Both the position numbers and the translations under genes were made by a program. From assembly GCA_030704615.1 (NCBI GenBank), contig CM060731.1:80228001-80292000 (forward strand): a stretch of DNA of 64,000 nt, read 5' to 3'. The stretch comes from Takakia lepidozioides. Lineage: Eukaryota; Plantae; Bryophyta. Numbering within the stretch: position 1 is the first letter of the stretch; each line of letters starts with the position of its first letter. The notes beneath the pieces were generated by a model. It made no database searches. It saw only the letters and a list, made by a program, of their open reading frames with translations, and was not told the origin of the DNA. Of this stretch, positions 13,532 through 62,480 are shown piece by piece.

Positions 13532-14162
13532 GCGTAGAGCAGGAATAGGGTGCCTTAGTGCCTCGTCATTGTTGCCACGTCATCGTAGCCACGTCATCGT
13601 CGCCACGTTTCGTAGACACGTCATCGTCGTCAATTTCTTTGGAACCTGCATACAGCAGGAATAGAGTGCCATAGTGCCTCGTCATCGTCGCCACGTTCTG
13701 TCAACACGTCATCTTCGTCAATTTCGTTGGAACCTGCGTAGACCAGGAATAATAGTGCCATGTCATCGTCGCCACGTCATCGTCGCCACGTTTCGTAGAC
13801 ACGTCAACGTCGTCAATTTCTTTGGAAACTGCGTAGAGCAGGAATAGGGTGCCATAGTGCCTCGTCATCGTCACCACGTCATCGTCACCATGTCATCATC
13901 ACCATGTCATCGTCACCACGTCATTGTAGCCACGTCATCGTCCCCACGTTTTGTCGACACGTCATCCTCGTCAATTTCCTTGGAACCTGCGTAGACCAGA
14001 AATAGGGTGCCATAGTGCCCTATCATCGTCGCCACGTCATCGTCGCCACGTTTCGTCGACACATCATCGTCGTCGAGCAGGAATAGGGTACCATATAGTG
14101 CCTTGTCATCGTCACCACGTCATCGTCGCTACGTCATCGTCGTCAATTTCCTTGGAACCTGC
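13532..14162. repeat. Compound minisatellite of about 6 higher-order units built from 14-bp CACGTCATCGTCGC subrepeats
   Basis: Unit heads gcgtagagcaggaatagggtgcc near 13532, 13647, 13735, 13830, 13988 and 14075. Each is followed by a variable number of cacgtcatcgtcgc copies and, in most units, a tail gtcaatttc(t/c)ttggaacctgc. Confidence 0.9.
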
Positions 14163-19731: not shown

Positions 19732-22700
19732 TTAATCACAAATGAAAGAAGCCTCGGCGTTCTGGTCGCTGGAATACAAGCAGGGGTGCTGCTTGAATCC
19801 TTGTTGGGCGAGCACACTGCGAACTTGTGTGACTAAGCTGCGGTTAGAGATGGGACCCCGCGTCTTGGCCAAAACGATTTGAATTGCATTGCTGAAAGCT
19901 CCATAAGAATCCACTTTGTTCTTGCTTGGATTAGCATCTGCTGAGGTCTCGTCATGCTGACACCCACTTAGAAGAATACCAGCATCAGATGGCAGACGTT
20001 CACTCTTACTAGGTCTCATCCCACTGTAGGCTGCTTCAGGAGGTGGAGGAGCACCTCCCTGTACAGCAGGAGCCACATAATTAGCAGCTTGGTTGTAGCT
20101 TTGATCGCCCAGTTTTGTCTTGAGGAACTGACCAGCCACACTCTCAACCATTCCCATCCATCCACCACTGTTGCCACCTCCACTCTGCAAACATAGTAAG
20201 TAGATACTTGCTCAGCCGGTCCCGGTATCAGGTTGTGGATAACAAAACAACAATCTCTACATGGCTCTCCCTCCTCTGGAACTAATGATCTTTTTCTTCT
20301 CCTAATTTCCCCTTCTCCTGCAATGCGACAAGGCTACGAATGGGACAAAGGAATGATTCACAACATGTCACCAAGGGAGTTTTCAAAAGGTGTAAACATG
20401 CAAACCGAATGTACCTTGAGCTGGTTGAGAATGACGTTCACGAACGTTTTTACTGCTGGGCTGGCATCATCTCCAAACATGTCAAAGATCGTAGTCCGAA
20501 TGTTCCCTACTTTAACATTCTGTCCTGTTCGTTCGCTCAAAATCTCTGTCAGAGTCTCAATGGAGAGACTTTTATTCTGGAAGTGTGGCAGAGGTTCACA
20601 ATAACCTCCCTCAGTATAAGCATTCCCACCATAGACTGGTTCCCGTCTATCGTAGTGACCATAGCCTTCACCCTCCCTCCTTTCATGCCGGCCGTAGCCT
20701 TCGTCCTCCCTCCTTCGATGCTGGCCATAGCCTTCGTCCTCCCTCCTTCCATGCCGGCCATAGCCGTCATCTTCCCTCCTTTCATGACGACCATACCCTT
20801 CTTCCTCCCTTCTTTCAGGCCAGCCATAGCTGCCTTCCTCCCTTCTCTCCCCCTGCAACAGTTCCACTACGGAGGTGCGTCAAAAATCTGAGCTTTGGTG
20901 AAGCAAACCACAAAACACTTTAGCATCCGGAGACACAAGGCCAAGCACCAGAAATCCAGTCAGGTAACACTGGATGTGATTAGAACTGTCACACCATACC
21001 AGGCCCATGAGAAAGTCAATTGTGGGCGTGAGAGGTCACAATTAGATCCAATGCTGGAACTCAACATTTTGAAGTGTAAGACATGGCAAATCAGTACAAT
21101 GAGTGCTCTTTTCAAGACAACACGTTGATAGCCGGAGCTTTTGAACATCAAGGGCCGGGCAGTCATGGTTTTGCATCCATGCCAACCCGAGCGAGTTGGA
21201 GGCCAGGATTGTGGTTGTAGGCCTGCAACCAGAACCTAACAACCAGAAAACATCTCTTTGCTGAAATTCACAAATACTGATCAGGTACGGATTTCGAAGG
21301 AGCATGCACAGCAAACTTGCACAGTGAAACCTTGCCTGATATTCATAGCCTCCCACATATTCTCCTCCATCGTGTCTGTACTCTCCACCAGGATGTCTGC
21401 TCCCTTCCCATCCATACCCTTGCTCTCCATGTCGTCTCTCACCTCTGTGCCGGTCGTGTGCATCATGATGTCCCTCCCCCTCGTGCCGTCTATCGTCATC
21501 ACTTGGGAAGATGAAATCTCTTGTTTTATTTTGGTCATATCCACTCTCCTCATGCCGCCCCTGCTTGCTCAAAGCTGACAACCCTTGGGAAAACATCCCC
21601 ATAAGGCCAGTGTTCTGCTCCTCTCCACCATGGCCTTTCTTCACATAGGACTCCAGACCCTTCTGCAGACCCTGAGAGACCAATCCCATGAGCCCTCCTG
21701 ATCCACCCTGATGTCCAATTTGCCCTCCCCCTTGTCCGCTTGTTGCATGCCCAGTTGGGGGGATGCTGGCATATGTCATCAAACCACCCCCAATCTGTTC
21801 CTTTTCAGAATCAATTAGACCTCCACTGTGGCATGAATCGGATATAAAAGTGAATCTAACCCCTGCAGGAATTTTGTCCACCACCTCCCGAAAATCATCA
21901 TCTGTAGACACACAACTTCAGATACTCAGAAAACAGGGAGTAGAACAGAAAAGGGCTGTAAAAGAGGGAGAGAGGAAGCTGCCAGAAGGTTCAAACAGAT
22001 TATTGAGGATTGCTAACATAACGCTTGAAACTTTATTATTAGGGAAGAAAACCATATAATGCACCACTAGCAAGGATACAGCACTGTCAAGAGGGACAAA
22101 ATGAAGAAAGATAGACCTGTCAGGAAATTCATGTCAGTAGGCACAATAGCCTCTTCCTTCCCTGTGTCATCAGCCTCTCCACTCTCCCCTGGCACCTGTC
22201 ACAGTGGTACCATGGTCACCATATTGAAGTAGCACTGTGGTTGAGACAATATTACCTGTCCCCAAGGTACTAGCTTGACTGCTCTAAATTAGATTGACTG
22301 CGTCATCATGAGACACATCCATGCTCAAAATTTTGAAGCAGCAATTTTGTTGGATCCTTACCTCAGATAATGAGTGAAGCTTTAGTCAAAACATTCATGG
22401 AGATCATTGCATACATTTCATACTCTTTCTTTCTCACTCTCAAACACACGACACCGACATTCATGCTCTGCTCAGTCACAGACACATTTCTCAACTAGAC
22501 CATCCACCAGCTCTAAGCACATTTCCTTGCTAAACCTCCATACAATGAGTACTGCATCTTCACCTGCGTCCCGTGACCACTATAGTGAAAGACCAGACTA
22601 TCCCCAGGTCCAACTCCTTTGATGAGTTTTGCCAGTGAGGATCGAATGTTGGCCCCAGTAGGTTGTGGCAAGCTTTTGTCAGTATCAAGAAGCACAAGAA

Positions 22701-22979: not shown

Positions 22980-23525
22980 TCTTAAGCTCAGGGCGGAAGC
23001 CTACCTTTCAACAGCAAACAGAAGCAGAGAGGAAAGGGAGAGTGCAATTGCCCGTAGGGTGGGCACCCTGAAGACAATATTCATTTTCTGATTCATTGTC
23101 CGGGGTTCTCTCACCGGAGAGATGCTCTCTTCAAATCTATCCAGGGAATTGTGCCTGTACCTCTGTTTACCAACTTTGAAAGTCTTGAGGCTGAGCCAAA
23201 GCCCAGGCCCTTTTGGGGCCTAGTTATTGGGCAAACCACACACAGCAGGTTGATGCTTGTGTAAAGGGATTTCTAGGGATATCTGGAAAACCCGGATCAA
23301 TAGTTTATTCCAAGGTAAGTCTTCCTACCGGCGTCAGCCCCTGACAAAGGTAGGTTCTGTCCCTTTGTGTTCCGCTCAAACTGGGCGCAGGGTCAATAGC
23401 CACAAGGCTACGGCATATTCTGCCGGACGAGGGTAGAAGAGATTTTCAAGGATCTGAATCTAAGTCCGCAAGCCATGACCCTGCTGGATAAATCTGACTT
23501 AGAGGCTGAAGTTTCTAAAGCCATC
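22980..23525 (+). mobile_element. Fragments of a CCHC zinc-knuckle LINE (RTEX-like, inferred)
   Basis: 22980-23350 is the reverse-complement homolog of 61650-62045 (LRAGSLPL..CNCP..EDxxHFLIHCPGFSH). 23430-23525 (VEEIFKDLNL..TLLDKSDLEA) matches an upstream part of the same LINE at about 62180-62270. Confidence 0.75.
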
Positions 23526-34788: not shown

Positions 34789-35931
34789 GTGAGGGCATCT
34801 GTGCTCACTGCTGCGCATACAAACATCATCTTTTAGATGAAATGGAAATTGTGTTTGGTCTCATAAATGAGACGTTTACATGAACTATTCTTTAGGCATA
34901 TTCAGTTTGGGGGTTCCCTTCATTAAAAGGGCAATGCAATGTCCTTGTGTCTGGTAGCATAGCCTTTCAGGTGTAGTTTGATTCTGTTCGACTATCATTA
35001 CACATGCGCTATGTGGGTTATAAAGGGGACTTTATTTCTTAAGATTGCATGTATCAGTATAGTGTACTTCCACATTGTATATGTATGTGGCTTTCTTGTT
35101 GTGTTGACAGAGGACTTCTGCAGGTGGGTGACCTGATGATCCCGAGTCTCCAGGTGGTCAGATTAGAGTAGAGCAGGGCCTAAGGTATGTGTCTCTGAGA
35201 AAGAAGTAGCTGCAAAGATGAGGCACACCAGTGCTTATGCAGTTATTTAGGTTATCATCTTCCAACATTAGATGTGGGGGGATTGACTGCCTCAAAGTGT
35301 CTTTATAGTACCTACTTTGAAGGAAGCCCAAAAAAATTTCAGGTCTAAACCCTTCCTCCTATGATGTCTTCTTGGCTGGCCCCATCTCTTTCTCTCCCTC
35401 ACTTAAGACACATCCAGCGATTGGCCCTTGACAGGCTGTGTGTAGAGCTGGATGCTCTCTGTACATTGCTGGACATGAAAATTGTCTTTCTTCCTGTGCA
35501 TTGAGTAATGGGCTCTGTAAATTTGCCGGACATTAAATAAACTTGAACTTCAGCTTTATTTTTTATGTAGAGTCAAGCCGAGGACTACCTGGTTATGCCC
35601 AGGCATGACAACCACTGCCTCCCACGGAAGTATCCCCATAACTTCTTCAGACTAAAGCTCGTGTAGTGAAAGATACATTACATTTATATTTTGGTGACAG
35701 TTTGTAGTTAGAAGTGTGTAATTTTGCCTCATTCAACAAATTATACCTTTCAAGTGTTGCTGGAACATTGATGGATTGAAGTAGTCTTGCCAGCTGGTTC
35801 CTCTATGATCCACAAAGTGTTCTTGACAACCTTGGTAGGGACGAATCAATTCCACTACATCAAAAACATGAACAACTTGGGGAAATCTAGATGAGCTTGC
35901 CAATGTAGTGGCAATAGCATTTTTATAGAGC

Positions 35932-36702
35932 TGTGAAGCCTCAAAACGGGTCTGAAGCATATACTCCCTTCCTCTCAAGAAACGTGTTTTCACAACAAAA
36001 GGGGCAAGGCATGCTCGAGAGGAGGATCAAGCAGGTGGATCTGACACACACGGGAGCTCTCATCCAAAGTTTGTACACCCAAATCACATATACACTAACA
36101 CCTGAATACACCGCCCTGACACAAGGTCAGGGCGCCGTCTTTATACAAAAGCCCTAACCATGGTTGCCCGCCGCGTGGTGAGGCATCATAGGCCAAAGCC
36201 CATGGCGCTGCCTTGTAGCCCTAGATTTGATGAAGGGCCAGGATCGAACCACCAACCTAAACCAACCCTAACCTAGACATCATTGTAACGGATTAACGGC
36301 TTTATACGCCAAAAAAATATACTATGGATGTGTATCGCCGTTTTGGATGAAACGGGTTATTTCCAGGCTTAAGCAAGTGTGGGGCTTTACGTCTCTGAAG
36401 CCTACCCCCCACGAAAAATCCTGAGCTCCGCGAAGGAAAACAAATAATGGGAAACTATCACCCTCCACTGCTGGGTGAAAAACCTACCAAGGGAAAACCT
36501 GGCACCTGCAAGTTGGGCCGAGGACAAAACCCTTGGCTAGGAAAACCGTGCAGGGAGTACAGATGATGAGATGTCATAGAAATGTTCTAGGTCCTAGATA
36601 TGGCAAGTCCGAGGACCCCAAGAGTCATCATCCGCATACTAAGCCGTTAAGAAGAAAAGTGGATTAAGCTGAAGTAGATCGGCTAAGAAGATCAAGACAT
36701 CA
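35932..36702 (-). repeat. Putative 3' LTR of the gypsy element
   Basis: On the minus strand it starts TG at 36702 directly after a purine-rich tract (..gaggggcgcacggtgggg) and ends ..TCACA at 35932. There is no second LTR to confirm the boundaries. Confidence 0.5.
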
Positions 36703-39700
36703 CCCCACCGTGCGCCCCTCCACGTTGATACATGTAAGATCAAAAACGAGCTCGGAATGCACCAAGTCTGTCAAGGAAATAGGTTCATCCCGCACTTCAG
36801 TATTAGAGCCTTAGGGAAGAAGAAGAGCACGTCGCCCACATAAAATCTGATAGATCAAGTAAGGACCGTCGATCTTGAGCTTAGATTTGCATGCATGTTT
36901 GTCATGCTGTAATCGAACGCACACGGTCTGTCCCACCTAAAACATGATAGAATACTTGACACGTTTGTTAAAATTACGGGCCTGGGTGAGTTGAGCCTTA
37001 CCAATGTTCGTCTTGGCATCATGGATAGACACCGCGAGCATGAAGATCCTCAACAAAGGTCTCAAGATCAACCGGATCAGCAACAGTAGAGATAAAAGGG
37101 GTAGAATGCAAAGGAGAAACACACTTGTGACCATACAATAACTCAAAAAGAGTTTTTTTGGTGCTAGCATGCACGGCGGTGCGATAAGCAAAGAGAATAG
37201 GGGGAAGAAAGGTATCCCACTCCCTGGTAAGTGCGCCATTCTTTTCCAACATTCGGCAAAGAGTTTGGTTGAAGCGTTCCGTAAGGCCATTGGTCTGGGG
37301 ACAGTATGGGGCGGTGGTGGAATGCTTGACACCGAAGTTGAAGCAAACCACCGTGAGGAGTTGGTTACAAAACTCCTTGCCCTGATCCATTAGTATCTCC
37401 CGAGGACACCCATGCCACATAAGGATCTCATTGAAGAAGAACTGAGCTACAGCATCATTAGCCTTGGAACGCAAAGGCCGGACTTCTATCCACTTAGTCA
37501 AGTAGTCGGTAGCAACACAAAGGTAGCTTCGACCCTTTGATGTGAGTGCGAAGGGTCCTACCAAGTCAATGCCAACACGAGCAAAAACATGGGTGACAGG
37601 CAGAGGCTGCAGCTCATACAAGATCCGGGCCCTAGGGAGAGCAATGTTAGCACGACAACCTTCGCACTTAGAGATGAACTCGGTGACGTCTCGGTGAATT
37701 CCCAGCCAAGAGTATACCTCTTGGATGCGGGCCACAGTTTTTTTGATACCAAGGTGACCTGCATACAATGAACAATAAAAACCTCCAATAAAGCATTCAG
37801 CTGGCTCCGTTGTGGCACCTCCAAGTAGCATGGCACTCCCCCTCGAGTGAGCTCCTTGAAAAGCTTATCACCCATAAAACGGTGAGTAGACACATGATAG
37901 AGAATTTGTTTACGCAAGGACTCGGAAAAGCCAACTGGTGAACGCCCTGATTGGCATCGCTGGAGTAGCACGGCATGTAGCTGATCATCCATGACTGCAC
38001 TGCACATAAGAGGTAGACAATGGGTTTTAGAGAAGGTGGTCTGGAGTGCCTGCACCTATGATCTCCAGCCAGGGATACCTTCACCTCATTTGTTACTACT
38101 CATGGACCAAATCAGGCCTTGAGGCTCAAGCCAATAGTTACACCGGAGTGCAGCAGCTGAATTACAACAAACTTGGGGGCCTAGGAAACAGAATGGATAA
38201 AACACAACAAGGAACTTCCACCAAACCATCCGAATTCTCGCTAAGCGATAGATCCACCACACATACCAACACACATATAAATCAACCAGGCTCATCAAGC
38301 AGGCTAGACCAGCCCCAAGCAGCCAATAGGCCAAGTGAATCCAGGGCCAAGAGTTGTTGATCTGCACAAAGAAGGGTAGGATCAGGAGGAGAGGCAGCAT
38401 CAACAGCAACCAGGTCATCCAAGGTGAGCATAGGCCTGCTGATAGGAGGATCAACCCGTGTGAGTGAATCAGCATTTGTGTTTTCCTTGCCTTTCTTGTA
38501 GACTATATCCATGTCAAATTCCTGCAGGTACATAGCCCATCTAGCAAGTCTGTCATGAAGTTCCCTTGGCTTAACAAGAGCCTTTAGTGGAAGATGATCA
38601 GTCTCTACTACACATAAGATTACAAAGATGGCAACATCAGATGCATCAGTCTGAAGCAAGAAAGGTAGCTCAAAGTTGGGAAACATCAGGATGGGAGCTG
38701 AACAAGCCTTGCAAAGGGTGTCAAAGGCAGCCAACTGGGAGAAAGTCCATTCAAGCCTGGCATCTTTGCACAACACCTTGGTCAGAGGGTGAGCAAGCTT
38801 GGCAAAGTTCTTTATGAAGCACATATAATAAGAAGCCAGACCAAGGAAGGATTTGATACAATGTTTATCCCTGGGGATAGGAAAGCCCCAAACAGACTCA
38901 AGCTTGGCAGGATCAGGAAGCAAACCATCTTTGGACAGAATATGACCAAGGAAGTGCAGCTCAGGCATGAACAACTCACACTTCTTGGGCTTTACTTTGA
39001 GACCTGCAGTGCGCAATTTGCTGAAAACACGCTGCAAATCAGCTAAGTGAGCATCAAAACTGGCTGAGTAAACAATGATATCATCGACATAAATTAAAGC
39101 ACACTCCCAGCGAAGATTGCCCAAGACAATGTCCATGAGGCGTTGGAATGTAGAGGTGGCATTGCCCAAAAGGCATGGTCTCATATTGGTACTTGCCCAT
39201 GCAACACACAAAGGAGGTCTTTTCCTTGGCTGCTTCAGTAAGAGGAACTTGCCAAAAGCCAGACGCAAGATCAAGAGAGGAGAAAATTGTAGCACCATGC
39301 AATTGATCCAAGGTTTCATTAATCCTGGGTAGAATGTAGGCATCTTTTTTTGTGATGTCATTCAGCTTCCTGAAGTCAACACAGAAGCGGGTTGTGCCAT
39401 CTTTCTTATCGACCAAGACAATTGGACTGGCCCAAGGAGAGACTGAAGGTTTAATCACACCAGCATCAAGCATTTTCTGGACTTCTTCTTGGATTATAGC
39501 ACGTTCCTTGACACTCTCTCGGTAAGCAAATTGTTTAATAAGAGCCCCTTCAGTGACATGTTGAAGAATAGCCACTAATCTGAGTAGAAAGAATTGCGGT
39601 TCTTGCCACCCCCGATGCTATGGGCAAACAGCAGAGCCCTCCTTATCTATTCTTACGATACCATCATCATGCAATAGTTCTAAGTCCTCCTCAAAATTAC

Positions 39701-39900
39701 CAGAGTCCAAGGAAACGTCATCAATCAAGGCATTACCTGCCTGGAGGTTGTCTGATTCCCCACTTACATCAGGCATGCCTCTGCCAGGCGGCCCGAGTGG
39801 CTCTTGCAAACCAAACATGAACCTCTATCTACCAGATCGCAACCAAGAACTTGCAGATGCGTTTGGCATGCAAAAACAATGACAATCGTGGAAGAAAAAG
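35932..39900 (-). mobile_element. Degenerate, 5'-truncated Ty3/gypsy LTR retrotransposon
   Basis: RT (SPWASPIVLVDKKDGTTRFCVDFRKLN; YVDD), RNase H (LQTDAS..ETDH, internally deleted), then integrase (GHLGIKKT..CEGC; GIDLVGP; PQTNGLTERFN; GPY motif), in gypsy order with frameshifts. No 5' LTR, chromodomain or intact gag seen. Confidence 0.93.
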
Positions 39901-40157
39901 AACCTCTAAGCCGTTGGGATGAGCAGTCGCGGCCTTGGGCTCGGCACCCGTGAGGCTTCGGGAGTCCAAACAGAGCAAGAAAGAAGCTTGAGCAGGTCGT
40001 GGGAATCGGGACTATACACTGCCAACGCTAGCCTCCTAGGTACGTTAGTTCCTATATGGGAAGAGGCTCTTATTTCCGCGAACTCTGGTTGGCATCACAC
40101 ATATATCTATGTCACTTTCAATCTTGCATTTGTTAAGGATGAGAGCTGGAAGTGATC

Positions 40158-40955
40158 TCATAGCCGTAAAATGTAGGGTACAAAGGAGTTTTGTGGGATT
40201 ATTAGGTTTTGTTTCATTATAATATTAATATTGTGGCTATGGACGACACCCTTGACACCTATAGTATTAATAGTCAATGGAGCATTGTACCATCCATGTT
40301 GACGAAGGGCCAGAAGTAGGGGATCATATTTTTCGTGTTTGTTAAGGATTGATTGGGCTAGGTAGTGACCATGGCAGAATGAAAATTTAACTATATGGAT
40401 AGTGAAGAAGGGATATGGACTTGTTGATGTTGTTGAGAAAAATATGGAGTTGGACAATCAATATATTAAGATAGGCAGTGGCATGATGGGTGGACGAAGA
40501 AAGTGCAAGGCAGGAACCCGGGAGTGATTGTGTGGTTTGATGGCCTACTTTGGGATGCCCTAGCGTTTATGAGGTTGAACCATTTGGAGATCTGATGTGA
40601 TAGGAGGAGTTTTTGGAGTGTCAAACTCCTTGATTATGTCGAATTATTTGAAGACCATGGAGTGTGGGGGTGTTTTTAATGTATGAGAAGATGAGGCCAT
40701 GTGTGTATTTGAGGGGGTTGAGTCCATCACATCATGCAATATTTGTCTATAGTGATGGTAAAATATGTTGCGCCTTTAGTTGTCCATATATTGTCCATTT
40801 CGGAAGTGGAGTGTTTGTTTGGATGTCCAAAAATGGTTGGATAGACTATATGTAGGAGATGTGGGGAGACAACCCATTTGGATATGTACGAATTTGTGTA
40901 AGTGCAAGAGGTGAGGTTGGGCAGCGCACGAGCATGAAGGGCATACTCCAAATAT
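40158..40955 (-). mobile_element. 3' remnant of a restriction-like-endonuclease (RLE) non-LTR retrotransposon, Dualen/RandI-like
   Basis: Across frames: LSNHFWTSKQTLHFRNGQYM..HTWPHLL..LHGLQIIRHNQGV, then IHIVKFSFC..NKHEKYDPLLLALRQHGW..TIGVKGVVH. These correspond to the decayed zinc knuckle/RHN and the RLE KxxKY..IGVxG motifs. Confidence 0.65.
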
Positions 40956-43900
40956 TCCCTAAAACGAAATCACGAAACTCACGAAATTAATTATATATTA
41001 TTTAAAAACATATTAGAAGCTCTACTCACACGCCCAGCCCACATGGTAATAGATACCCACAACAAAAGTGCCCAGTACTTTAAGGTCAACACGTAAACAA
41101 TCAGATTTGTTAGAACATATTCGAAAGGTGAAGTGGCTCTTAGTTCTGCCGGCCCAGCCAGAGTCTTTTCTCTCTCTATGTGTCAGAACATATTTGTGAT
41201 CACTGTAGAAACTGCATGTTACGCAAAAACTGAGACACCCAATCCTACGCTTCATCGCCATTGCTTCATTGTGTCATTGTATTTTGTGTCTGTCGCAGGA
41301 TCTTTCTGATGATTCGTCAAGCAATCATCAGTGTGGTTGAGTGGTCTGCACTCTACTTGCACGTAAGCTGATTGCAGAGAGAGATCAATAAATTATTATT
41401 TTTTCTTCACTTTTCTTTCTCATTGGATTTTCATATTATTGATTTTTCTTCCTATTGTTCAGCCCCATGCCATTGCTCAACATTTTTCGTTGGTGTTTAG
41501 GTGGTGTTTGATATGAGTCTTCTAGGTTTTGCATATAGTGTACTGGTAGCAGGTCTAGTTTGAATTGTAAATGTAGATGACCTAGTCCCTCAAATAGATG
41601 CTTGCTGAAACCTCAGTTGGTATGTGTGAATCCTTACCTCTACTAGAAGCAAGCTTAATTAATGTTGGCAGTTAAATGTGTGATGAGCTTGCCTCTTGGT
41701 GGATGTCGTGTGTTTCCGTGGACTGTCCATTTGTTATGAATCACTTGGTCACTAGTCATATTGGTGGCTAAGATTGGGTCTGGAAAAGGATTCGGGGGAT
41801 GTTGCTTGCTTATCTAGGGTTGTCCAAGATAGACACATCTATGGCATTGGACTTAGAGTTAGCATAGCAGTTGTATGCTGAACGGGGTGCAATACAGGGA
41901 CTACCAAAGCAAGCCTTTGGTCTTGAGGAGCATCATGGGTTTAATTAGATGCAGGAGACGACTGATCCAACAGTAGGATATAGTCTCTTCATCGCAAATC
42001 ATCTTGTACTTGCGCCATGAAGACTGAAGGTGGCTATTATGTGGGATGTACCCTGACCAAGACAAGGAAATAATGATGCAATTGTAATCAAGTAATTGCA
42101 TATGGGTCGATAGTTCCAAAAAACCACTTCGGGGATTCACAATTGAAGTAATATCCTAAGGTTTGTGAACTATGAGCGTTCGGCTGTACATGAAGGTTGG
42201 TGAGATGATGAAAGCAAGTTTCATCTTAACATGCACTCAAATGGGTTCCCTTTTCAACACCAATCTACAGATTTCATCCCTGTTGAAAACAAAGTGACAA
42301 CTATTCTTCTGCATTTTTAACTCATTTCAACCACATGACCATTTTCTCTTTCCACCATTTCCACTGGCAGCGTACTCTACAAATACTAATTGGGCCATCC
42401 CTCTGCCGCGCAAGGTATTAGTGTCCCAGTACTTAGAACTATTCAAAATATAGCCTAAGCAACGTAGCACAGATGAATTCCAAGGTTGCTTGCAATTTGA
42501 TGCAATATACACGCATATTACCTTTGAAATTGAGAATACCCACGTTGATGAATGATGAAGAAAGCTAAAACCTCCTGCTTGAGGCTTGTCATACACATGT
42601 TCAAATCTCATCGCATGTGTCAGAGTGAAGTTCCTAATGAGAGGTTCTATAAATCAATTCATGAGATACTCAGTTTCCAAGTGCTAGTGCTGTTCATATG
42701 GTGTGATTATTTGAGACTTCAACACATAGACAACTAATCTAAGATCTCTAGACTTACGATGTCTCCAATTCACTTCGGTGTCCTCATTTTTGTAGGCAGA
42801 CTGCCAAATTTTAGAGAACTCGCCGTGCCAAACCACTGCTGAGTCGGAAATTTTGACGTAAAGAATGTTGTCCTTACACCAACTGATATCGAAATTTGAA
42901 AGCAACTTTTGTTTTCTCTTCTCCGAACACCTGCAAAAAGTTTTGACAAACATATATTATGTCTTCTTCCCCTCAGTCAGGTCATTGTAAGACTGAGGTG
43001 GGGTCCCCATGGCCGAATTGACAATGTAATTTCCAAATCTGCCAAACGGAGTGAGCCTTGAGACATGCCCAAACATGAGTCATTGCTTTAGCATTGCCAT
43101 TCTTCTTTACCCCTTTTGTACATCACCACGGACTCAAACCCCTGCAACCTCAAATAGTGCCCAACGAGCTTAATGGCCCAGTCTACACTTCCTCAACACT
43201 CTGCTCATGTGTATTTTAAATAGAAGGCTTAGAACTTTTTATATTGAAACCTTGTTTCCTTGTATATATAACCAAGGGTGATTTTCATTAGACAGTGCAC
43301 TTGGGGTTTTGTTGGTGAATCCCAATTATGTAGTCGTGAAGGTGAATATAATTCGTGAATTTCTTTGCAGAGATGTCGCATTTGGAACAGTCCACATGTT
43401 TGTTCAACAACTCAATATTTCATCTAAATTTATATAGTGTAGGGTTTCTAACTACAATAGGTATGTGTACCAACTGTTAGATTGCAAAAACAATAATGTA
43501 CCAGATAACTATAGATTTTTAAAGTTGATTACTATGGATTGCAGATGTTACATATAAAATCTTACGGACTAAAAAAACATCATCTACACTCATATAATGG
43601 CACAAAGGAAAACATACTAGAGGTGCCATTTTTAAAACCAATCCAAATCCACTTTTATATGGACTAGTTATCTTAGGTATTGAGAGCTATGGACTATTTT
43701 ATACCTAAAAAATAAATTGTCCATAACATGCTATATTTTGGATATTGGGATGTCACCTTTTACTAAAAAGACATACAAACCTATAATCTAGAGGTGTCGG
43801 GTGGTATATGGACAAGTGGTTGTAAACTCTAAGTTTTGACATTTTCAAATTAAAGAGTAATATATCTAGTTTACAATGTCTTCAATATTTTGAGAGGGGA

Positions 43901-46174
43901 CTCTTTACTAAAAACGTTAGGTATACTACTTTCTTTCTTTTTTAATAAAACAAAAACATATAATGATTTTTTTTTTTTTCTCCCCATGGACTTTCATGGA
44001 CTCAACATCTGTTGTTTTTAGACACCAAATCCTGCAAACACCCAGATAAGGGACAGTGGGATGAATCAATTTTATTTTCAATCTGATACAAACTAGAGAC
44101 CAGACCTTCAATCCTGCCAGTTTCACTTTCTGTATTGTGGATTATATTGTGGATTTGTCAAAACACTCCTCAAGTTGCAGTTTTGGTTATGAAGTAGGGT
44201 ATCTTCATCATGGGGGGTCTCTCTTCAAGGTCCTCCTTGTTGGATAGAAATTGGCTATGGTGTTCATCATTTTTCTCATGGTTCCATGTGGTGTTAGGAT
44301 CAGTCTAATGATTGAATGGAGTTTTGATTCACGGTCACAATTTATTTTGATATCTCAATCTTTCTACAAATGGGCTGAGTGACACAATAATTTTCTCATC
44401 CCGCACCTACTATTGATGTGTTTGCTTTATGGTCCCTTGGGTTTTTTTTTTTTTTGTGAAAATAAAGAAAGGAGACAGCGGCCCTTGAACTCATAAAGAA
44501 AAAACGCAGATACAAGGAGGAAAAAAATAACCTCCGATGAGTGCCATAAGATGCGCCGATGAGTGCCTTTTTCCCCCTTATCGATAACATTTTGAGGGCT
44601 ATTTCCCCACTTTAAAAATTATTTTTATATTTTTTATATTTTTAAATATCCGAAATTAAAATATCAAACTATAATTGTCAGCCATAATTGAATGTTTTAT
44701 CAAGTTGTTGTACCGTGGAATTCGACATAAAATTTAGATATAAATAATTTTGTTACTTAATTTTTTTGTCTCAATTTTGTCACTTGTTTACATAAATTGG
44801 TTCTTTTATTTTTTGTAATGTAGATTATTATTTTTTCAAAAAAAACGAATATGTCATTATGAAAAAATTTAATTTGTGTTGAGGAACCTTTATGTTGGAC
44901 CCGCAATCTTCAAGTTGGATACTTGAGAAATTGATAACCGAAAAAATAAAAAATTAGATTTCTCTATTGATTATCTCTAACCGACCAAATTTTCACCTAT
45001 TTGCATTATGCATAACTACCTTGGTTTCAATTTAGAAAATATGTCTTTTTCGGGTTTTTTAGAAAAGCAAAAACTTGAGACCTTAGTACCTTATATCATT
45101 CCATTTACTGCAAATGGCTTTTTTATTTTATGCAAATATTTTAGATACAGCCATGCCACACTTGGGGATCTTTCAGGTGGTGAAATCGTGTTTCAGCACA
45201 GGTCTTGGCTTTCATTCAATGTTGAAATGGTTCACAAACTTCCAATTGGAAGCTATGCAACGCCACCATTCAATACAGGCTAACCGCCTCTCTATCCATT
45301 ACAAACCTGCAACCTGTTCGCATTCGCACTCTATCCGCTTTGGATAGACTCATGCACGGATCCCTGCATTCTAAGCTGAACCACTTCTCATGAAAACATA
45401 AGTGCTACAAAACAACTCGAACCTGGCACTCACAGACTCGAGCTCATCTTTCTCGAGTGATAAAGAAATGAAGATACAAGCACACAAGCTCTCTCAAACT
45501 CACACACTTGCACATGAAAACATCACTCATATTAAGTCGAGCCAAATGCACCCCACGCAATCCACACTACAGCGCCATAGCTAGACGCGGTGAGGCTCAA
45601 CTCGAGAAAGATGAGCCCACCGCGATCTGCCGTGAAGATAACAACGCCAGGTGCCCAAACATATATTGACCCCTGGATTGACACTTGGGTCAATCCCAAA
45701 TGTCAATATATAAAAGCTAGCTATTTTCTAGCTAACTTCACACTAGTGGTAAAATAACTTGACAAATACAAAAGAGTCACAACCTTGCAGAACATCCATG
45801 TGAATTGGGTCATCTTTATTGTCTAACTGAAACACCAAAGTTTTGTACAAAATGATGAACTTCTAAAAAAGAGGTCCACTCTTCTTGGAAGAAGCATATA
45901 TTATAGTGTCACTTCACCCTAAAGGACTATTGTTTCCCATTGGACGATGGACATTTTGAACCCTAATTCACCTAGAATATACATAGATAAGGTACAAACA
46001 TCCAATCCGTTGGCTACTTGCTCTAGTATGGAACTTTCTAGTTATTGTGGATAAGAAGATAGAGAGACCACCATGTTATTTAGGGTTGTGCCCACAATGA
46101 AATAACATTCTCTAGTGTTATTGTGGGATCTACTATAGTATGAAACAGCTTGCTTCTAGGACTTACAAATAATG

Positions 46175-49100
46175 TTATGTATATTGGACTTTATATGTGG
46201 GGTTGCCGGTTGTTTCTCTCGAAATATTGTCCATGTACTCAGTATCTTGTTGACTTATAATCGTGCTTATTTTTGCTACATCTGCAACAGCTAGTAAATA
46301 TTGTATTTGTTGGGTGTCCCCATTCTAGGCTATAGACCATCTTGCTCTAGTAGTACTCTACCTTAAGTCCGCTCGAGAGGTACAATAAATCTTAAGGTGT
46401 ACAGTTTTTTTCAAGAAAATTATTTTGACTGAATACACTAGCTATGTCTATGACAAATTATTGAATAGAGAAGACAAGCCCTAGCAACACTTTCTTTCGT
46501 TTTTTTCTCTTTCTTTATCTTCTTCAACTTTCTTTTTCGCACCAGCTACAAACTTCGGGGAGGCTCTTTGGTTTAGTTTCAGCTGTATCAATGGAATCAA
46601 ACTATAAAATATAAGGAGAAATATTTAATGGTCAACAAATTTTGGATAATCTATTCTAATAAATTGAACAACAAACTCTAGTTGAACAAATACTATAAGA
46701 AAGAATTTGATCACCTGGAGGGCTGGAGGACTTGGGAATCGGCACAAGGCGCTGTGGAGGCTGTGGATTTTGTCGTGAGTACAAAGATTCTAAGAACTCC
46801 AAGTCTTTGTCCAATTGATTACAGAAATCCATCGATTTTTGGAAGGGTCCCTCCAGCTCTTTTTCATATGAATTCAGCATAGTGTAGTATTTGTTCTAAA
46901 AAGAGAAATATTATACTTGTATTAAGTTGAATAGAGAAAAAATCTAAATATTGATAAATGAGGACGTCATACATAGTAATATGTATCATATAGAGTTTAT
47001 ATATCAAACAAACTAAGAATTTTCAATACAATAAACTTTTGCATAGGAGCATATTAATGTCAAATACATACCAACAAGTTTACTATTTACTATAGAATCA
47101 CTCTATAATATTGGAGAATACAACTTCAAGTTTCCACCATAAGCTAGGATAAAACGTAAAGAATAATGTACATGCACATGCATTATTACATTACATAGTT
47201 TAACCTCTTCGAATTGGGATAATTGTCGTATAGATTGCGTTATTGATAACATAACCCCAAACAAATTATTATCACCATTACAACTAGAAAGTATTTTCCT
47301 ATTAACCGACCTTTCTCTATGAACTAATTGCGTGCTTGCATTATTATCTTGAAAAAAAACCTAGACAAATAAACCAACATTTTGACCAAACTCGTCATTA
47401 CCTAAAACACAAAGTTGTGAGCATGAAAATACATAGCTTGTACCATGGTTTCATTAGAAGGGGAGTGAATATCATAAAGTTGCCATTGTTGCATTTGAGT
47501 TTGGAGCTCTTTTAGCCTTTTCATCATTTGTGGGGTTGCTCCCACCTTCAGATATGTCCAACATTACCCTTTATTAACATTATGATATGCACTTACAATG
47601 TACATTGAAATCGTTGACTCTACGTTATATATTTTTAAGAAATTCATTAACCAAAATTTAGGAAATATAGTCATTCCAAATGGAGCACTACTAAACTGCA
47701 AAAATAATGTAACATTCAAAATTTTAAATGACACACTCACCCTACGATTCTTGATGTAGGCATCTACAAGACGAGGGTAAAAACTATGCGAAATGATTGT
47801 AGCTTTCATGCCATCCAGTTGAGTGCCATTCAAAGGGCAATGTGCCTTCCGTAAGAGTGTCTTGTGCGCAAATCTCAATTTGTCATAGACATAACCAGAA
47901 GATACACGTGAATATGGTCGACTGTTGTGGAGGGTAAGATGTTCCAATTGGGTAGATACCTTTTGGTTTGGATTGATGGGTCGACATTGTACAATGTTAT
48001 AAAGCCCACAAGTATGAGGAGAGGGAGCCAAAGGCCAAGATGTGTGCAAATCTTGAGAACAAAGTTCATGTGGTTCACAAGGCTTTTGAGGAAAATGTGT
48101 ATTGTGCACAATCTGTTTGGTATTATAAGCACAATTGCATGGACTACAATGAGGATGTGTGCATGATTCACTGGAGCAAAATTGATTCGGAGAGGAAGAG
48201 CCAAAAAAATCTTCGAGTCTTGACAGATCGATGGATGACAATGGTTCGCAATGAGTCTTCATTGACGTGATTAATTCACAATTGGGAAAATTTGATACTT
48301 CATCGGTCCGCCAGTTATTTTCTCTATGTCTTATGCTTCCTGGTTCAAACATGAGAACAAAGTCTACGATAATAATGAGCAAGTAACACACATTGAATAA
48401 CAATTTCTCTCCACAAAAAAAATCAGGCATCATATTTTTTCAATGCAATGTCATTTAAATACTCAATAAGTAATAAATGACAACAATAAAATGATCGATT
48501 GTAATACTCTAAATCCACTAGAGTGCTTTTAAGTCTCTATATGAACTGAAAAATATCTTTGTTATTGCCCTTTATGGGGTCAAATGTTTGATATATGAAC
48601 TTGGGATGCATAGTTTAATGGAGATCACCAATTGCATTCATGTTAAAATCAACGATCATAATAATATCTATAGAAGTCAATAAATGTACATTTGTTTTAT
48701 GTCCACCATATATTCAAACGTAATTGTTCTGAAGTTAAAGCCCACATTAATTGAAAATATGAGACCACATTTCAAATACCTAACTTTGCTTCCATTGGTT
48801 GACTGCTCAATGTTCAATTCTTTAAAAACAAATTGGGATGTGACAATTTTCCCGTGATACGTAAATTATCACAGATGGTAATAGACCTCGAGTACATTTG
48901 GTTTGTCCACAATTCTCCAAAATTTAGGATTGGAACTTATAACCAAATAATATCCATAATTGCTTAGAGCATGAGATAATTACCTCATTTTTATTGTGAT
49001 CTAAATTTATTTTTGTATATATGCATACATGTGTACATTATTAGAAATACAATTTGTATCTAGGTCTTGAAGCACTTACGAGGTTTAATGCCCATTAGAG

Positions 49101-49452
49101 CTATGGACGAAACCAAACACTCCTCACGTTTGCTTGCGCAACACCTTGCACAATGCCATATTTCAGGGATTCTTTTAAACTTCACATTTTTCTTGCACCA
49201 TGTGCCACAAGCACACATGTCTAAAATTGGAGGCTCGTTGGAGCAATCCAGCATTGTATAATTGTTGGCCACATCAATTGATTGATGATCACACTTCAAA
49301 GAATTAGAGACAAATGACGTATCCAATGTCATTTCTTTTTTTGTATATTTTGGACTATGATGTAATGGTGAGAAATGTCCATCGTGACGTAGATAGTCGA
49401 GTCCAATATGTTCTCTTTCTCTTTTCCGTTTTCTATGTCTAGGATCATCCAT
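46175..49452 (-). CDS. Class I KNOX-like MEINOX (KNOX1+KNOX2) protein apparently lacking ELK and homeodomain
   Basis: Phase-consistent exons 49452-49080, 48339-47741, 47545-47444, 47360-47205, 46895-46715; the terminal exon is uncertain (e.g. 46281-46175). KNOX1: MKATIISHSFYPRLVDAYIKNRR|VGATPQMMKRL. KNOX2: NKYYTMLNSYEKELEGPFQKSMDFCNQL. Confidence 0.75.
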
Positions 49453-50971
49453 TTCAATATAGTTTGCAGATCCCTCAGTCTCCCAAAGTTCTTCAAACAC
49501 TTACTCATTTGCACTTGACTGTTTAGAACATGCAGACTTCCAACCTCTCGGTGGTGCTTGACCATGATTTTTCCCTCTTATGCTTTCTGGATAGGATTTC
49601 CACGTACTTGTGGTGGGATCATAAACTTGACGAATAAACACCATCCAAACCAATCGTAATACTAAGTTCTAATAGTTTATTCTTAGCCCAGTGTTTTTTT
49701 TCTAGTAGACAATATTTTTGTGTGATGGTAGCAATTACAACTAGATGCCCATATTAATCTAGAATACTACTTATACATATTTTCGTGGAGAGTTTGTGAA
49801 TAACGTCATGTTTATTTAAAATGTGTGGTTATTGCATTATAAAAAGTGAACTAGCAGCTAACTTGAATTCATGCTTTACATATCTCTCTGTATTATAGAC
49901 TCTAAATGATGCAATCATTCATCTCCACTTTATCATGCCCATAAACTTCCTACAATAAGACATCAAATATTTTTCTAGACGGTCATATCGCCTTTAGAAA
50001 CACTATCATAATTTATAATTATACTATTTGCCTTCTTCAGCCTCCAAATGTTACTGTGGATCTTTATGTCTCTCACCCTACTTCAGTTTACATCATTTTA
50101 CAACTCATGGCACCTTGCTGACCATTTCTTTGCAATCCAAACTCTTTCATCTCGTGGTTGAAACGGAAGAGCTTAGTGTTTATTAAGAGAAAAAGATTGC
50201 TTCATATCTCGCGGTCGACCGTTCAAATACCCGGGGGAGGGGGGCTTTCACTATTCCGTCGGCTAAAACATCATGTGTGATCAATATTTTATTGCACAAT
50301 GGGTTTATGTATGGGAAGAGGTATGACTGATTAAAAATTTGAAGTATATGTAGGGGATAATGAATGTATATATAAAAAAAAGATTATATTTACATGTATG
50401 GGCACAAGTTTATATATATTTTTCATCATTTGTAGATGGGATTGAATCCAAGACCACTTGAGTCATATTTTGCCAGGATATACTGTCCAATGAACTTAGA
50501 GCATAAACGTGGCAAAATCATCTTGGTTGAGTGGATTGTGATGAATCTCTCTTCTTGGTTTCTTCCTTCTTTTTTTCTCATTCAGCCCTAGTTTTTCCTC
50601 CATCTTTCTTGTGGTGGCTCCAACAACTCGATCTCCTCTATTGCATTGTTGCGTTTGTCCTTTCCCAAAGCTTGGATAGATGAGGTGAAATGGTACCTAG
50701 CTTTTGAACAAGAGAATAGATAACATGATGCACAGTCATTCAAAAACCGCCCGACGATGTCCATATTGAGACACCCAATCTTGCATCCACCCACGTGTTT
50801 CGTCCACTGTCTATGTGAAGGATCAACAGATATACCGTGGGTGCCGACGAATCTCAACAAAACGTCACATGATAAGAGAATTTCCGGGGTTGACCACGTA
50901 TAAATTATAAAACTAATTCAAGTTCTTGATGCTGATTTGCATAATTTGTTCTTTGTACTCGGAGAAACTAG

Positions 50972-51446
50972 CACTACAACAAATGGGAGGGGGGGGTTTG
51001 CGATGCCAGTCGCGCCCCCACGCCCCGCGTGGCGCCGAGCGTGCGACGCCAACCCCGCGGAGCGTGTTTGCGATGCCGAGCCGTTGCAGCCAAAACCCGC
51101 GGGTCGCCACCTGGCCGTCGCACGGGCGGATGAAGGGCAGCAGGCAGCCCTTCCGTGCGACGCCCAAGCATCGCCCCCAGCGAGGAGGAGAAGCCAGCCC
51201 TTTCTGGCGACGGCCGGTCGTCGCAAGCCCAAAAAAAAAACCCTTTCTTGCCATTTCTTTCATCGCAGCCCTTTTTTGCGACACCCAGCCGCATGTCACA
51301 TTTTGCGACAGCGTGCCGTCGCCAATTGCGACCCCCGGCCTCATAAATCCTAAAAACCGCGTCGCAGGTTGCGACGCGTGGGGGTCGCAGGCAGCGACTG
51401 CAAGGCTTTCTAGGTTTAGGTTTAGGGCCTTTAGGGGTTCTCAGTT

Positions 51447-51477
<31 letters not shown>

Positions 51478-54400
51478 CCATATGGTACTGGGGTAGGGTG
51501 TTTGTTTTTCTTTGTGGTTTAGCTTGTTGTTGTGGACTTTCTTGTAGATTGTGACATTCATTTTGATAATTCTCTTGATACCACATCTGTATGTGTTGCT
51601 CCAACATATTCTTGCCTCTGCCTTCTTTCTTGAAAGACTACCAGCCACAGCCATATTTGATCAATCATAGAAATAAACTACAATATGCATGTACATGTAC
51701 AATCGATCGAAGGGACGGGTCGAGTTCGGTGCGAGAATTGTTATGTAGCTTTGATTTTGTGTCTAATCAACTTGAACATCATCATCCGGAGCTTCTTCAT
51801 CCTCATCAAGCTGCAAGTCTTTTTGGTCATCGGAGTCATCATCATAAATGGCCCGGCCCTCAAAAGGCACCTCCGAATCATCCTCCACCTCGTTGTCAAT
51901 GGCCGTGTCTTCGTCTCCTTCTCCAACATCCGTATCTTCTAGAGCTTCATCATATAGGGTCCAGGATGCATTGTCCAGGGCGTTATCATCATCTTCTACC
52001 CCCTCTACCCAACCTCCATCATCAACATCATTATGACCAGTCTCTCCGTCCACCCCATGAAGATCCGAGACCATGATAGATACATCTTCCTCTTGGCTGA
52101 GCATGCACAACCACCTTCCAATTCCCCCCTCTTGTTTTGTCATCGGAGAAGAAAACTTGCTCCATGTCTGAAGGCCGTGAAAAAAAATTCATCGGAGGGA
52201 CGATGAGTAGGGTTGAGCCTATCTGCATTGACGCGCATGAAACCACAATCATCTTGCACTAGTGTTGCGGAGGGCCCCACCAGATGTGGCTGGAACCACC
52301 TTCTCTTGAAGAGAAGAGGTCGGTACCTTGTATACTGAAGTTGGAGTATGTTCTCAAGCTCTCCAATGTACTCAAGTTTGCTCATAACAGGTCGTGTATC
52401 TCCCTTGCCCCACATGGAGTCTTGCCAATATGTGGCACACAAGCCAGAATCAAAGGTTGTTTTGCACTTCATGTCAAGAGCACGAATGCGGAAATGACGA
52501 CCGTGAACCCAAACCGCCGTGTATGAGGTCGCGAATTAAGAGGGGCCCCTTGCAATATCTTGCACCAAATCTGAAACCACCTCTCCTTGAGCAACAACGT
52601 CATAAACTGAAGTCCGAAGCCACTGTTGGAATGAACTTAGAGGCTGCAATTCCATGGGCAAATTTTGTGAATGAACATTCCGGCGGCCCGCTCCTCGTCG
52701 TGGCGTCTAGTAACCGGCCTTGGATGGTTCCGCCTCCATGCAAGCGTCTCCTCCTCTCGTTGTTGAACAAGATTATTGTATCTTGTCTCCCACTCATGTA
52801 TGGATGGGGTATTCTTCAGTATGAAGTCATGCGCTTGCTCAATCACCAAGGTCGGCAATTTTACCCTCTTCGATTTTTTGGGCAAAACGATGTCATTGGT
52901 TTGTGCATCCTCCTCTTCCTTCCACATCCGCCCTTGCCATGTACTCCGTGCAATAGAACATAGCTTCTTGCAACGTATACCCCATCTGTCATGCTATCCT
53001 CCGAGTGCGCCATTTGTCTTACAAATCTTTTCAAAATCTTCATATAACGCTCAAGGAAGTACAGCCACCGAGAATGAACGGGGCCGACAATCGAAGCCTC
53101 TTCCACTAAGTGCACAACCAAGTGCACTTGGATGTCAAAGAAGGAGGGAGAAAGGTGCATCTCCAACATACACATTACCTCCGCCGCCTCCTTCTTCATG
53201 CGTGGAAAATCTGATACTTCCAACTCTTTGGAGCAAATCCACCGGAACAAGCCTCCCAATCTATAGATTGTCTCACGAACCTCGGGAGTCAATGTCCCAC
53301 GTACTGCAATGGGCAAGATGTCTTGCAATAGATTGTGGTAGTCATGAGACTTCAAACCATGGACCCTGTCTTCGTCGCTGAACTTCGTACGGAGGGATGA
53401 CCCATAACCAGTTGGTGTTCGGACAACACTTATGGTGGCTATCACTTTCTTGTATTCCTCCTTTGTCCATTGCCAAGATGCGCGCCTATACTTCCATCGT
53501 ACAACACCCTTTGGGTCCACACCATTTTGTTCGGCCCATAGATGACGCATGCGACCCTGCTCCTCAAGCTCCTTTCTAACACCGAGAGAATCTCCTTTTG
53601 CAGCCACTCCCTTCTTTGTTGGCGTGCCATGAAGAACCCGAAAAAGGGACGAGCAGACATTCTTCTCAATATGCATGGGATCTAGAAGATGACGAATCTT
53701 CAAGTCCTACAAATATCCCCACCCACAAAGACTTACACAAAATATTTTACGTGAAAATGACAATGCAACGCATACCAAATGTGCAATATCACATGCATGC
53801 ATAGGGATATTGACGGTGTTTTTGTGGAATATGTACCGCCCAATATGGCAACTCATAGAAAATTGAAAGTCGTTTAATGTCGGGCACGTCCACTTCACCG
53901 TCCATGCCTGCATGGGCCTCCTTCCATCAGTCCTCCCAAAACTGCCCGGACGGTGTCATAGGGGGGGGGGACGTACTTCCTCTTTGCCATCAAACAAATT
54001 TTTCTCTCTTCTTTTCCATCGATGGCTCATAAAAAGAAATTTGCGGTGGTTGGGATACACCATCTTGTGAAGATGGCGGGAGCTATGTGCATCAAGATCA
54101 TCGCCACAATGCAAGCATGCATGGTACCCTTTGGTGTGTAGCCCCGAGCAAACAACTAGTCATGTACTACACATCCCGCCACATTAGCAAAAACAAAAAG
54201 TTGTCATGTGCATGGCCCATAATGCCTTCTACCCCACTACGGTGCACAAGACTGTCGCCGCTACTTCAATCAATCCCAATCCTCATCGATATTATCCGGC
54301 ATTGACAAGTGAATGTACGCGGGTTGTTCATGGGGAACATAATATACCTGGACAATCATGCATTGTCCAAAGCAAGATGCCTCTCATCTGAAAATATTGT

Positions 54401-61649: not shown

Positions 61650-62480
61650 AAACAAAAGGGACAGATCCTACCTCTGTCAGGGGCTGACGTTGGTAGTAAG
61701 ACTTACCTTCACATATAGAATTAATCCGGGTTTTCCAGATATCCTCTACAAATCTCTTCACACAAGCATCAATCTGTTGTGTGTGAGATGCCCAAAAACT
61801 AGGCCTCAGAAGGGGCTGGGCTTTTGGCTCAGCCTCGACTTTTTCAAAGTTAGTAAACAGAGGTACATGGAAATTCCTTTGATAGATTTGAAGAGAGCGT
61901 CTCTTTGGTGAGAGAACCCCGGACAATGTATCAGAAAATGAGTACTGTCTTCAGATTGCCCACACAACGGGCAATTGCACTCTCCTTTTCCTCTCTGCTT
62001 CTGTTTGATGTTCAAAGGTAGGCTTCCTGCCCTGAGTTTAAATTTCAGTCTAGTGCCGAGAGTGGGTAGACCCTTGAGGTCATCCAAGATGTCCTCCCCC
62101 GTGTCACTGACTGGAAACAAGTTCAGGGAAGTTTTTTGCCTAACTTCATTTTCATCAGACAATCTCATGGCAACAGACATGGTTGGACACTACAGCCTCT
62201 AAGTCAAATTTATCCAGCAGGGTGAAGACTTGCGGTTTCAGGTCCAGGTCCTTGAGAATCTCTTCTACTGTCTTCTGCCAGGACTTAGCCTGTTTGACAG
62301 GTCGGTGGGCGGTCCTGTTTCCAAGATATAGAGTCGATTAACTTTTGATATCTGGTGTTGGACATATGCTGCAGCTGACCTCACCATCTGACCTTAAACA
62401 CTCGTCGGGAGCTTAAAAGAGAGGGAAGATACTTTTTGTCATGTCAAGACAAGGACAGGACCCCTAGGGTCATTGTCATG
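61650..62480 (-). mobile_element. 5'-truncated LINE, C-terminal region with CCHC zinc knuckle (RTEX-like, inferred)
   Basis: GQLQHMSNTRYQKLI..SWQKTVEEILKDL..GTRLKFKLRAGSLPL..CPLCGQSEDSTHFLIHCPGFSHQRDALF..DIWKTR, with frameshifts. Confidence 0.8.

Follow-up and report, generated by a model that had tools for sequence, protein, structure and literature searches.

A 64,000-nucleotide stretch of the genome of the early-diverging moss Takakia lepidozioides (GenBank assembly GCA_030704615.1, contig CM060731.1, positions 80,228,001 to 80,292,000; hereafter the window, with coordinates counted from its first letter) carries on its minus strand, at 49452-46524, a predicted five-exon gene that encodes a KNOX-type MEINOX domain and has no homeodomain. 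A MEINOX-only KNOX gene had been proposed here in an earlier note made from the DNA sequence by eye, and the proposal is borne out: the gene looks functional, not broken. All of its introns follow the GT-AG rule with compatible phases, and the exons join in frame into a predicted coding sequence of 1314 nt, or of 1338 nt with an alternative exon 2 acceptor, both divisible by three and giving a product of 437 or 445 residues. The G+C content is 40-44% in the exons as against 28-29% in the introns.

Exon 1 (49080-49452) begins with the ATG at 49452, given as the upper bound of the locus in the earlier note and the likely start codon. It comprises 124 codons plus one nucleotide, lies in a stop-free open reading frame (ORF) of 146 codons and ends at a phase 1 donor (C|GTAAGT). 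Its product displays a basic RHRKRKRE cluster, the motif LRHDGHF and a Cys-rich stretch containing WHCxxCC, and matched no family in a Pfam search. Exon 2 (47741-48339) encodes a variable N-terminal region followed, at its end, by the first half of KNOX1 (MKATIISHSFYPRLVDAYIKNRR), and closes with a phase 0 donor (AGG|GTGAGT). Its conserved acceptor (ccag|GA) lies at 48339 and a second, in-phase acceptor at 48363. The stop-free stretch of exon 2 runs for 291 codons in DNA of 35.5% G+C, whereas 300 Markov simulations of the region yielded no ORF longer than 213 codons. Exon 3 (47444-47545), which is in phase 0 at both ends, supplies the second half of KNOX1 (starting VGATPQMMKRLKEL) and a linker in 34 codons, between the acceptor gaag|GTG (AG at 47547-47546) and the donor ATG|GTACAA. 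KNOX2 (YYTMLNSYEKELEGPFQKSMDFCNQLDKDLEFL) and a Pro-rich tail are encoded by exon 4 (46715-46895), with a phase 1 donor (CAG|GTGATC). The fifth and last exon (46524-46582) completes an Ala codon, continues with ETKPKSLPEVCSWCEKES and stops at a TGA, the protein ending in ...EVCSWCEKES.

The spliced, in-frame KNOX1 and KNOX2 domains claimed in the earlier note are both real, each matching its Pfam profile, and the GT-AG joins keep the frame across them. Pfam was applied exon by exon, with KNOX1 scored as a half domain on one exon. KNOX1 (PF03790) matched the minus-strand ORF at 47567-48433 from position 2 to position 26 of its 43-position profile, with an E value of 2.1e-5 and 24.6 bits where the cut-off is 26. 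KNOX2 (PF03791) matched the minus-strand ORF at 46659-46895 from position 14 to position 46 of 48, with an E value of 2.5e-6 and 27.4 bits where the cut-off is 27.

The class of the MEINOX was compared by eye with a published alignment (PMC4617109 supplement 3). KNOX1 has the pattern ..AYI....VGA.., where the class I rows read AYIDCQKVGAPP and the class II rows AHVSCLRIATPV-DQLP. In KNOX2, YEKELEGPF (YE.EL..PF) runs straight into QKSMDF (..SM.F), as it does in the rows for class I and KNATM, and the four residues that class II rows have in addition (QQHVRVHAMEAV) are missing. This by-eye comparison favours a class-I-like MEINOX and should be taken as a lead only. As a separate observation, the KNOX2 string QKSM.F (46820-46840) is also found in an angiosperm KNATM row (Morus), whereas the canonical class I rows differ at this point (PMC4617109 supplement 3); it may represent a parallel change in homeodomain-less KNOX proteins.

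An exhaustive phmmer search with the KNOX2 exon returned three matches, P0002 (44% identity, E 4.5e-5), P0003 and P0004 (62% identity over 32 aligned residues), of which P0003 was rejected as a coiled-coil false positive. P0002 and P0004 were called as ORFs on contigs that contain introns and stem from other sequencing samples, namely L002 (SRR22405887, 6.1 kb) and L003 (SRR33208216, 2.6 kb). The exon order and the positions and phases of the first three introns are common to the window gene, L002 and L003, while the last intron is in phase 1 in the window and L002 and in phase 0 in L003. In the reverse direction, the ORFs of L002 and L003 match solely this locus within the window. Two scans of metagenomes with the family alignments and a PDB profile search found no match, and the ESM Atlas gave no usable match. 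The only relatives found are raw ORF calls on sequencing-run contigs, none of them annotated, suggesting that genome annotations may be missing the gene.

The correspondence between the three loci extends through every exon. ORFs homologous to exon 1 lie directly 5' of the KNOX1 exon in both relatives (E 1.5e-4 for L003 and 8e-4 for L002); LRHDGHF is common to the window and L003, WHCxxCC to the window and L002, and the basic cluster reads KERTRKRE in L003. The exon 1 donor falls at the same codon and phase in L003 (CCC C|GTAAGT) and one codon later, again in phase 1, in L002 (A|GTGAGT). All three loci split an Arg codon at the exon 2 acceptor (cag|GA or cag|GG). Exon 2 is 35% identical to its L003 counterpart over 149 residues (tblastn, E 5.5e-18), and this long, variable exon, which reaches 922 codons in L002, ends in the pattern L(D/N)xMKAxIxxHxFYPRLVxxYI(K/R)x R(R/K)|GT. 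The KNOX1 exon of L003 scores 25.7 bits against the Pfam profile. Homologues of exon 3 start with VGAS (L003) or IGAS (L002), conforming to (V/I)GA(S/T), and are 43-45% identical over 21-22 residues. Exon 4 matches both loci with tblastn E values of about 4e-13, and its L002 donor (T|GTAAGC) is in phase 1.

Two candidates for the last exon had been put forward in the earlier note, and only the Lys/Glu-rich one near 46545, which is exon 5 as described above, has stood; the alternative at 46281-46175 has not. The CSWCE motif of exon 5 recurs in the last exon of L002 (DCSWCEQDKK..., then a stop), which follows an AG acceptor in the same phase, and L003 likewise ends in a short, Cys-bearing exon (...GTCICCGSS..., then a stop) with phase 0 on both sides. 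The CSWCE shared with L002 is not a chance match: when the L002 downstream DNA was shuffled 3000 times, no shuffle had an equally informative 5-mer in common with the window downstream DNA. A plain test of shared 5-mers was not significant (298 of 2000 shuffles) because Lys-rich words swamped it, a problem that weighting by information content removed.

The conserved stop exon comes after KNOX2, and neither an ELK domain nor a TALE homeodomain was found. The reading frame ends before any homeodomain, as it also does in L002 and L003. The absence of both domains down to the next gene, which encodes a mitochondrial Rieske protein at 34.1-34.8 kb on the plus strand, had been noted by eye and is upheld by motif searches and by profiles. 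Searches for WF.N.R, WPYP, NWF, QRKR and ELK..L in all six frames across the 64 kb turned up no homeodomain-like sequence. Stop-to-stop segments of the minus strand, 28 codons or longer and taken from 34.6-37.4 and 39.8-46.9 kb, run as three alignments, gave no Pfam match to ELK (PF03789), Homeobox_KN (PF05920) or Homeodomain (PF00046), the sole relevant match being the KNOX2 exon itself. The gap between these intervals (37.4-39.8 kb) is a retroelement, covered by the motif search and by two Pfam-scanned ORFs only. The minus strand of the downstream stretch (34800-46523) thus holds no ELK or homeodomain exon, and it holds a Ty3-type retroelement at about 36.9-39.9 kb, also on the minus strand, with RVT_1, RNase H and integrase in frames broken into several pieces. 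A full-length KNOX gene could have its homeodomain exons outside the examined region, owing to a very long intron, to misassembly or to splicing that skips exon 5. The phase 1 donor of exon 4 means that some exon must come after it, and the L002 and L003 contigs end 260-300 nt past their stop codons. Yet a phase-compatible short stop exon is present in all three loci, no frame of the 64 kb has a homeodomain signature and the Rieske gene that comes next lies on the opposite strand, which leaves a full-length gene extremely unlikely.

Sequence divergence was measured on 82-84 ungapped MEINOX codons, counted per exon and summed, for each pair of the three loci. The pairs are 50-58% identical at the amino-acid level. 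Their synonymous sites are saturated, with a proportion of differences (pS) of 0.81-0.93, and at nonsynonymous sites the proportion (pN) is 0.24-0.32. Saturated synonymous sites together with low pN point to an old divergence in which the MEINOX codons have been under purifying selection, and the neutral ratio of nonsynonymous to synonymous substitution rates (dN/dS) that would mark a pseudogene is not seen in these alignable blocks. Purifying selection and the conserved stop exon together argue strongly against both a truncated pseudogene and a missed homeodomain exon. The idea that the gene arose independently in this lineage is not supported, given that two other taxa have the same architecture with a stop soon after KNOX2 and that synonymous sites between them are saturated. 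Because the architecture and the early stop recur in two deeply diverged taxa, the homeodomain-less state is ancestral to an old family. The description of the product as microProtein-like is not supported either: microProteins are small, single-domain proteins, typically well under 200 residues, whereas the predicted product is more than twice that size and has conserved exons (1 and 5) outside the MEINOX.

In green plants, KNOX/BELL dimers start the diploid programme after fertilisation. We consider it fairly likely that the window gene is a functional, conserved KNOX-type gene without a homeodomain, the MEINOX of which would sequester or redirect BELL partners and thereby modulate KNOX/BELL activity. 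The basic cluster in the conserved N-terminal exon may be a nuclear localisation signal. This exon is followed by a long, fast-evolving spacer, by a divergent class-I-like MEINOX with KNOX1 spread over exons 2 and 3 and KNOX2 in exon 4, and by a very short Cys-bearing tail before the stop; the Cys motifs at the two ends of the protein may bind metal. Dimerisation of KNOX with BELL-class TALE proteins takes place via the MEINOX, which presumably still binds them here. Since a protein with no DNA-binding domain could not itself bind DNA, we infer that it would withhold its BELL partners or redirect them, as has been proposed for MpKNOX1A/B in Marchantia antheridia and demonstrated for the angiosperm proteins KNATM and PTS/TKD1. 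Antagonism of BELL is on these grounds a reasonable proposal, while a role in gametes or in the zygote switch would be a guess from analogy.

Several points weigh against such a function. The dN/dS count is limited to alignable, conserved blocks, and the family is known from three loci only. A word-based protein search with the 289-residue exon 2 ORF found no match, and the same search with the KNOX1 part alone found no candidate sharing three words. In exon 3 of L002 (L002:4934-5035) an in-frame TAA stands right after the conserved Trp, at a codon that is CAA in the window and AGG in L003, and the gene may for this reason be dispensable in some taxa. L002 is otherwise open, its very long exon 2 included, and the TAA might reflect a nonsense mutation of very recent date, a mistake in the assembly or a site of read-through. 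KNOX1 also deviates at usually conserved positions (HSFY for HPxY, NRR for CQK) and, as a half domain, scores slightly below the Pfam cut-off, so that BELL binding may be altered.

Two other explanations draw on these points. The L002 stop, the lack of any annotated homologue in the word-based protein search and the AT-rich, transposon-rich surroundings would all fit a truncated KNOX pseudogene, decaying after the loss of its ELK and homeodomain exons. However, all five exons are open and have canonical splice sites, the ORF length is far above chance, and the structure and terminal stop exon have been kept in three taxa at a divergence where synonymous sites are saturated and nonsynonymous ones are not, making decay very unlikely. 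The main alternative, conceivable but on balance doubtful, is that the gene is conserved and homeodomain-less while its divergent MEINOX no longer binds BELL, a new function being exerted through the N- and C-terminal Cys motifs, for instance by metal binding or with other partners. Such a change would account for the off-consensus positions in KNOX1 and its score below the curated cut-off, for conserved exons outside the MEINOX that match no known family, and for the retention of the CSWC and WHCxxCC motifs each in two of the three taxa. Against it, the KNOX1 and KNOX2 cores are the best-conserved blocks of the family, as continued use of the MEINOX interface predicts.

As a BELL-modulating, homeodomain-less KNOX gene, the window gene would belong to a kind that is already known, because homeodomain-less KNOX1 genes have been published for Marchantia polymorpha: the paralogues MpKNOX1A (Mp4g12450) and MpKNOX1B (Mp2g11140) are expressed in antheridia and sperm, have been proposed to sequester MpBELL2/3/4 and were called liverwort-specific, with the angiosperm proteins KNATM and PTS/TKD1 cited as independently evolved inhibitors (Dierschke et al. 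2021, PMC8476127). Like the window gene, the Marchantia genes are bryophyte genes of the KNOX1 type with a conserved MEINOX and no homeodomain, but their C-termini, as read from the reverse primers (...PLEGEV and ...AQTMFS), are unlike the CSWCE tail, and they are reported from liverworts whereas the window gene is in a moss. The published MpKNOX1A/B primers had no match in the window gene, L002 or L003, which says little on orthology. KNATM of Arabidopsis and PTS/TKD1 of tomato likewise have KNOX1 and KNOX2, lack both ELK and homeodomain, and act as competitors for BELL partners; they are, however, angiosperm-specific and small, compared with a window protein of about 440 residues with extra conserved N- and C-terminal parts. 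Canonical class I KNOX proteins (STM/KNAT, moss MKN2/4/5 and MpKNOX1) resemble it, by eye, in the class-I-type KNOX1/KNOX2 signatures, but they carry both the ELK and the TALE homeodomain that it lacks, and its KNOX1 is unusually divergent. Outside plants, homeodomain-less isoforms of animal MEIS1 also bear a MEINOX and no homeodomain; as described in two reports (PMC3157405, PMC13379096), these belong to another kingdom and are alternative splice products of a full gene, whereas the window gene is a separate gene.

Homeodomain-less KNOX proteins are thought to keep BELL proteins from being active in the wrong cell; among non-seed plants, liverworts are the only group from which they have been described so far. 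Liverworts and early-diverging mosses have kept 'gamete' BELL genes (PMC8476127), and a homeodomain-less KNOX partner in Takakia would be a plausible fit to this pattern and would extend the known distribution; the window gene would be a version with extra conserved parts beyond the MEINOX. Where a moss lineage with 'gamete' BELL genes also has such a conserved gene, the age and generality of the safeguard would become testable. We tentatively raise the possibility that the homeodomain-less KNOX1 lineage is not liverwort-specific but forms an old family, present in an early-diverging moss and in at least two other taxa. In that case the BELL-sequestering partner of the gamete KNOX/BELL zygote switch would go back at least as far as the ancestor that mosses and liverworts share, or else would have had a third independent origin.

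Upstream of the gene lies a CACTA-type transposase (about 52.9-56 kb), including an ORF with DUF4218 at 52.9-53.7 kb. With this ORF so close by, and with the word CACTACAACAAA at 50972, the gene might be part of a KNOX gene that a transposon captured and carried along. It lacks enclosing terminal inverted repeats, though, and CACTA-like words occur at chance frequency, on which grounds capture was rejected. In addition, no transposase lies beside the L002 or L003 genes, and the divergence among the three loci is ancient yet constrained. We give capture almost no credence.

The same word at 50972 lies in a G+C-rich island (50900-51660), about 1.5 kb upstream of the ATG of the gene, with long overlapping ORFs on both strands and a poly(T) run. 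The island has no Pfam or Rfam match, and the CACTA-type element may end here. Rfam gave no match anywhere in the window. Elsewhere, a 33-nt unit that encodes an 11-residue repeat rich in Gly, Tyr, Arg and Glu is repeated in tandem, in five or more overlapping copies, inside a long minus-strand ORF at 20626-20846, just downstream of a metacaspase gene (21.0-22.8 kb). A complex array of direct repeats of 42 to 183 nt, rich in the word GTCATCGTCGCCACGT, occupies 13532-14148. Finally, 22995-23518 and 61655-62281, about 38.5 kb apart, are linked by three pairs of inverted repeats with 81-90% complementarity and probably hold the same dispersed element twice, in opposite orientations.

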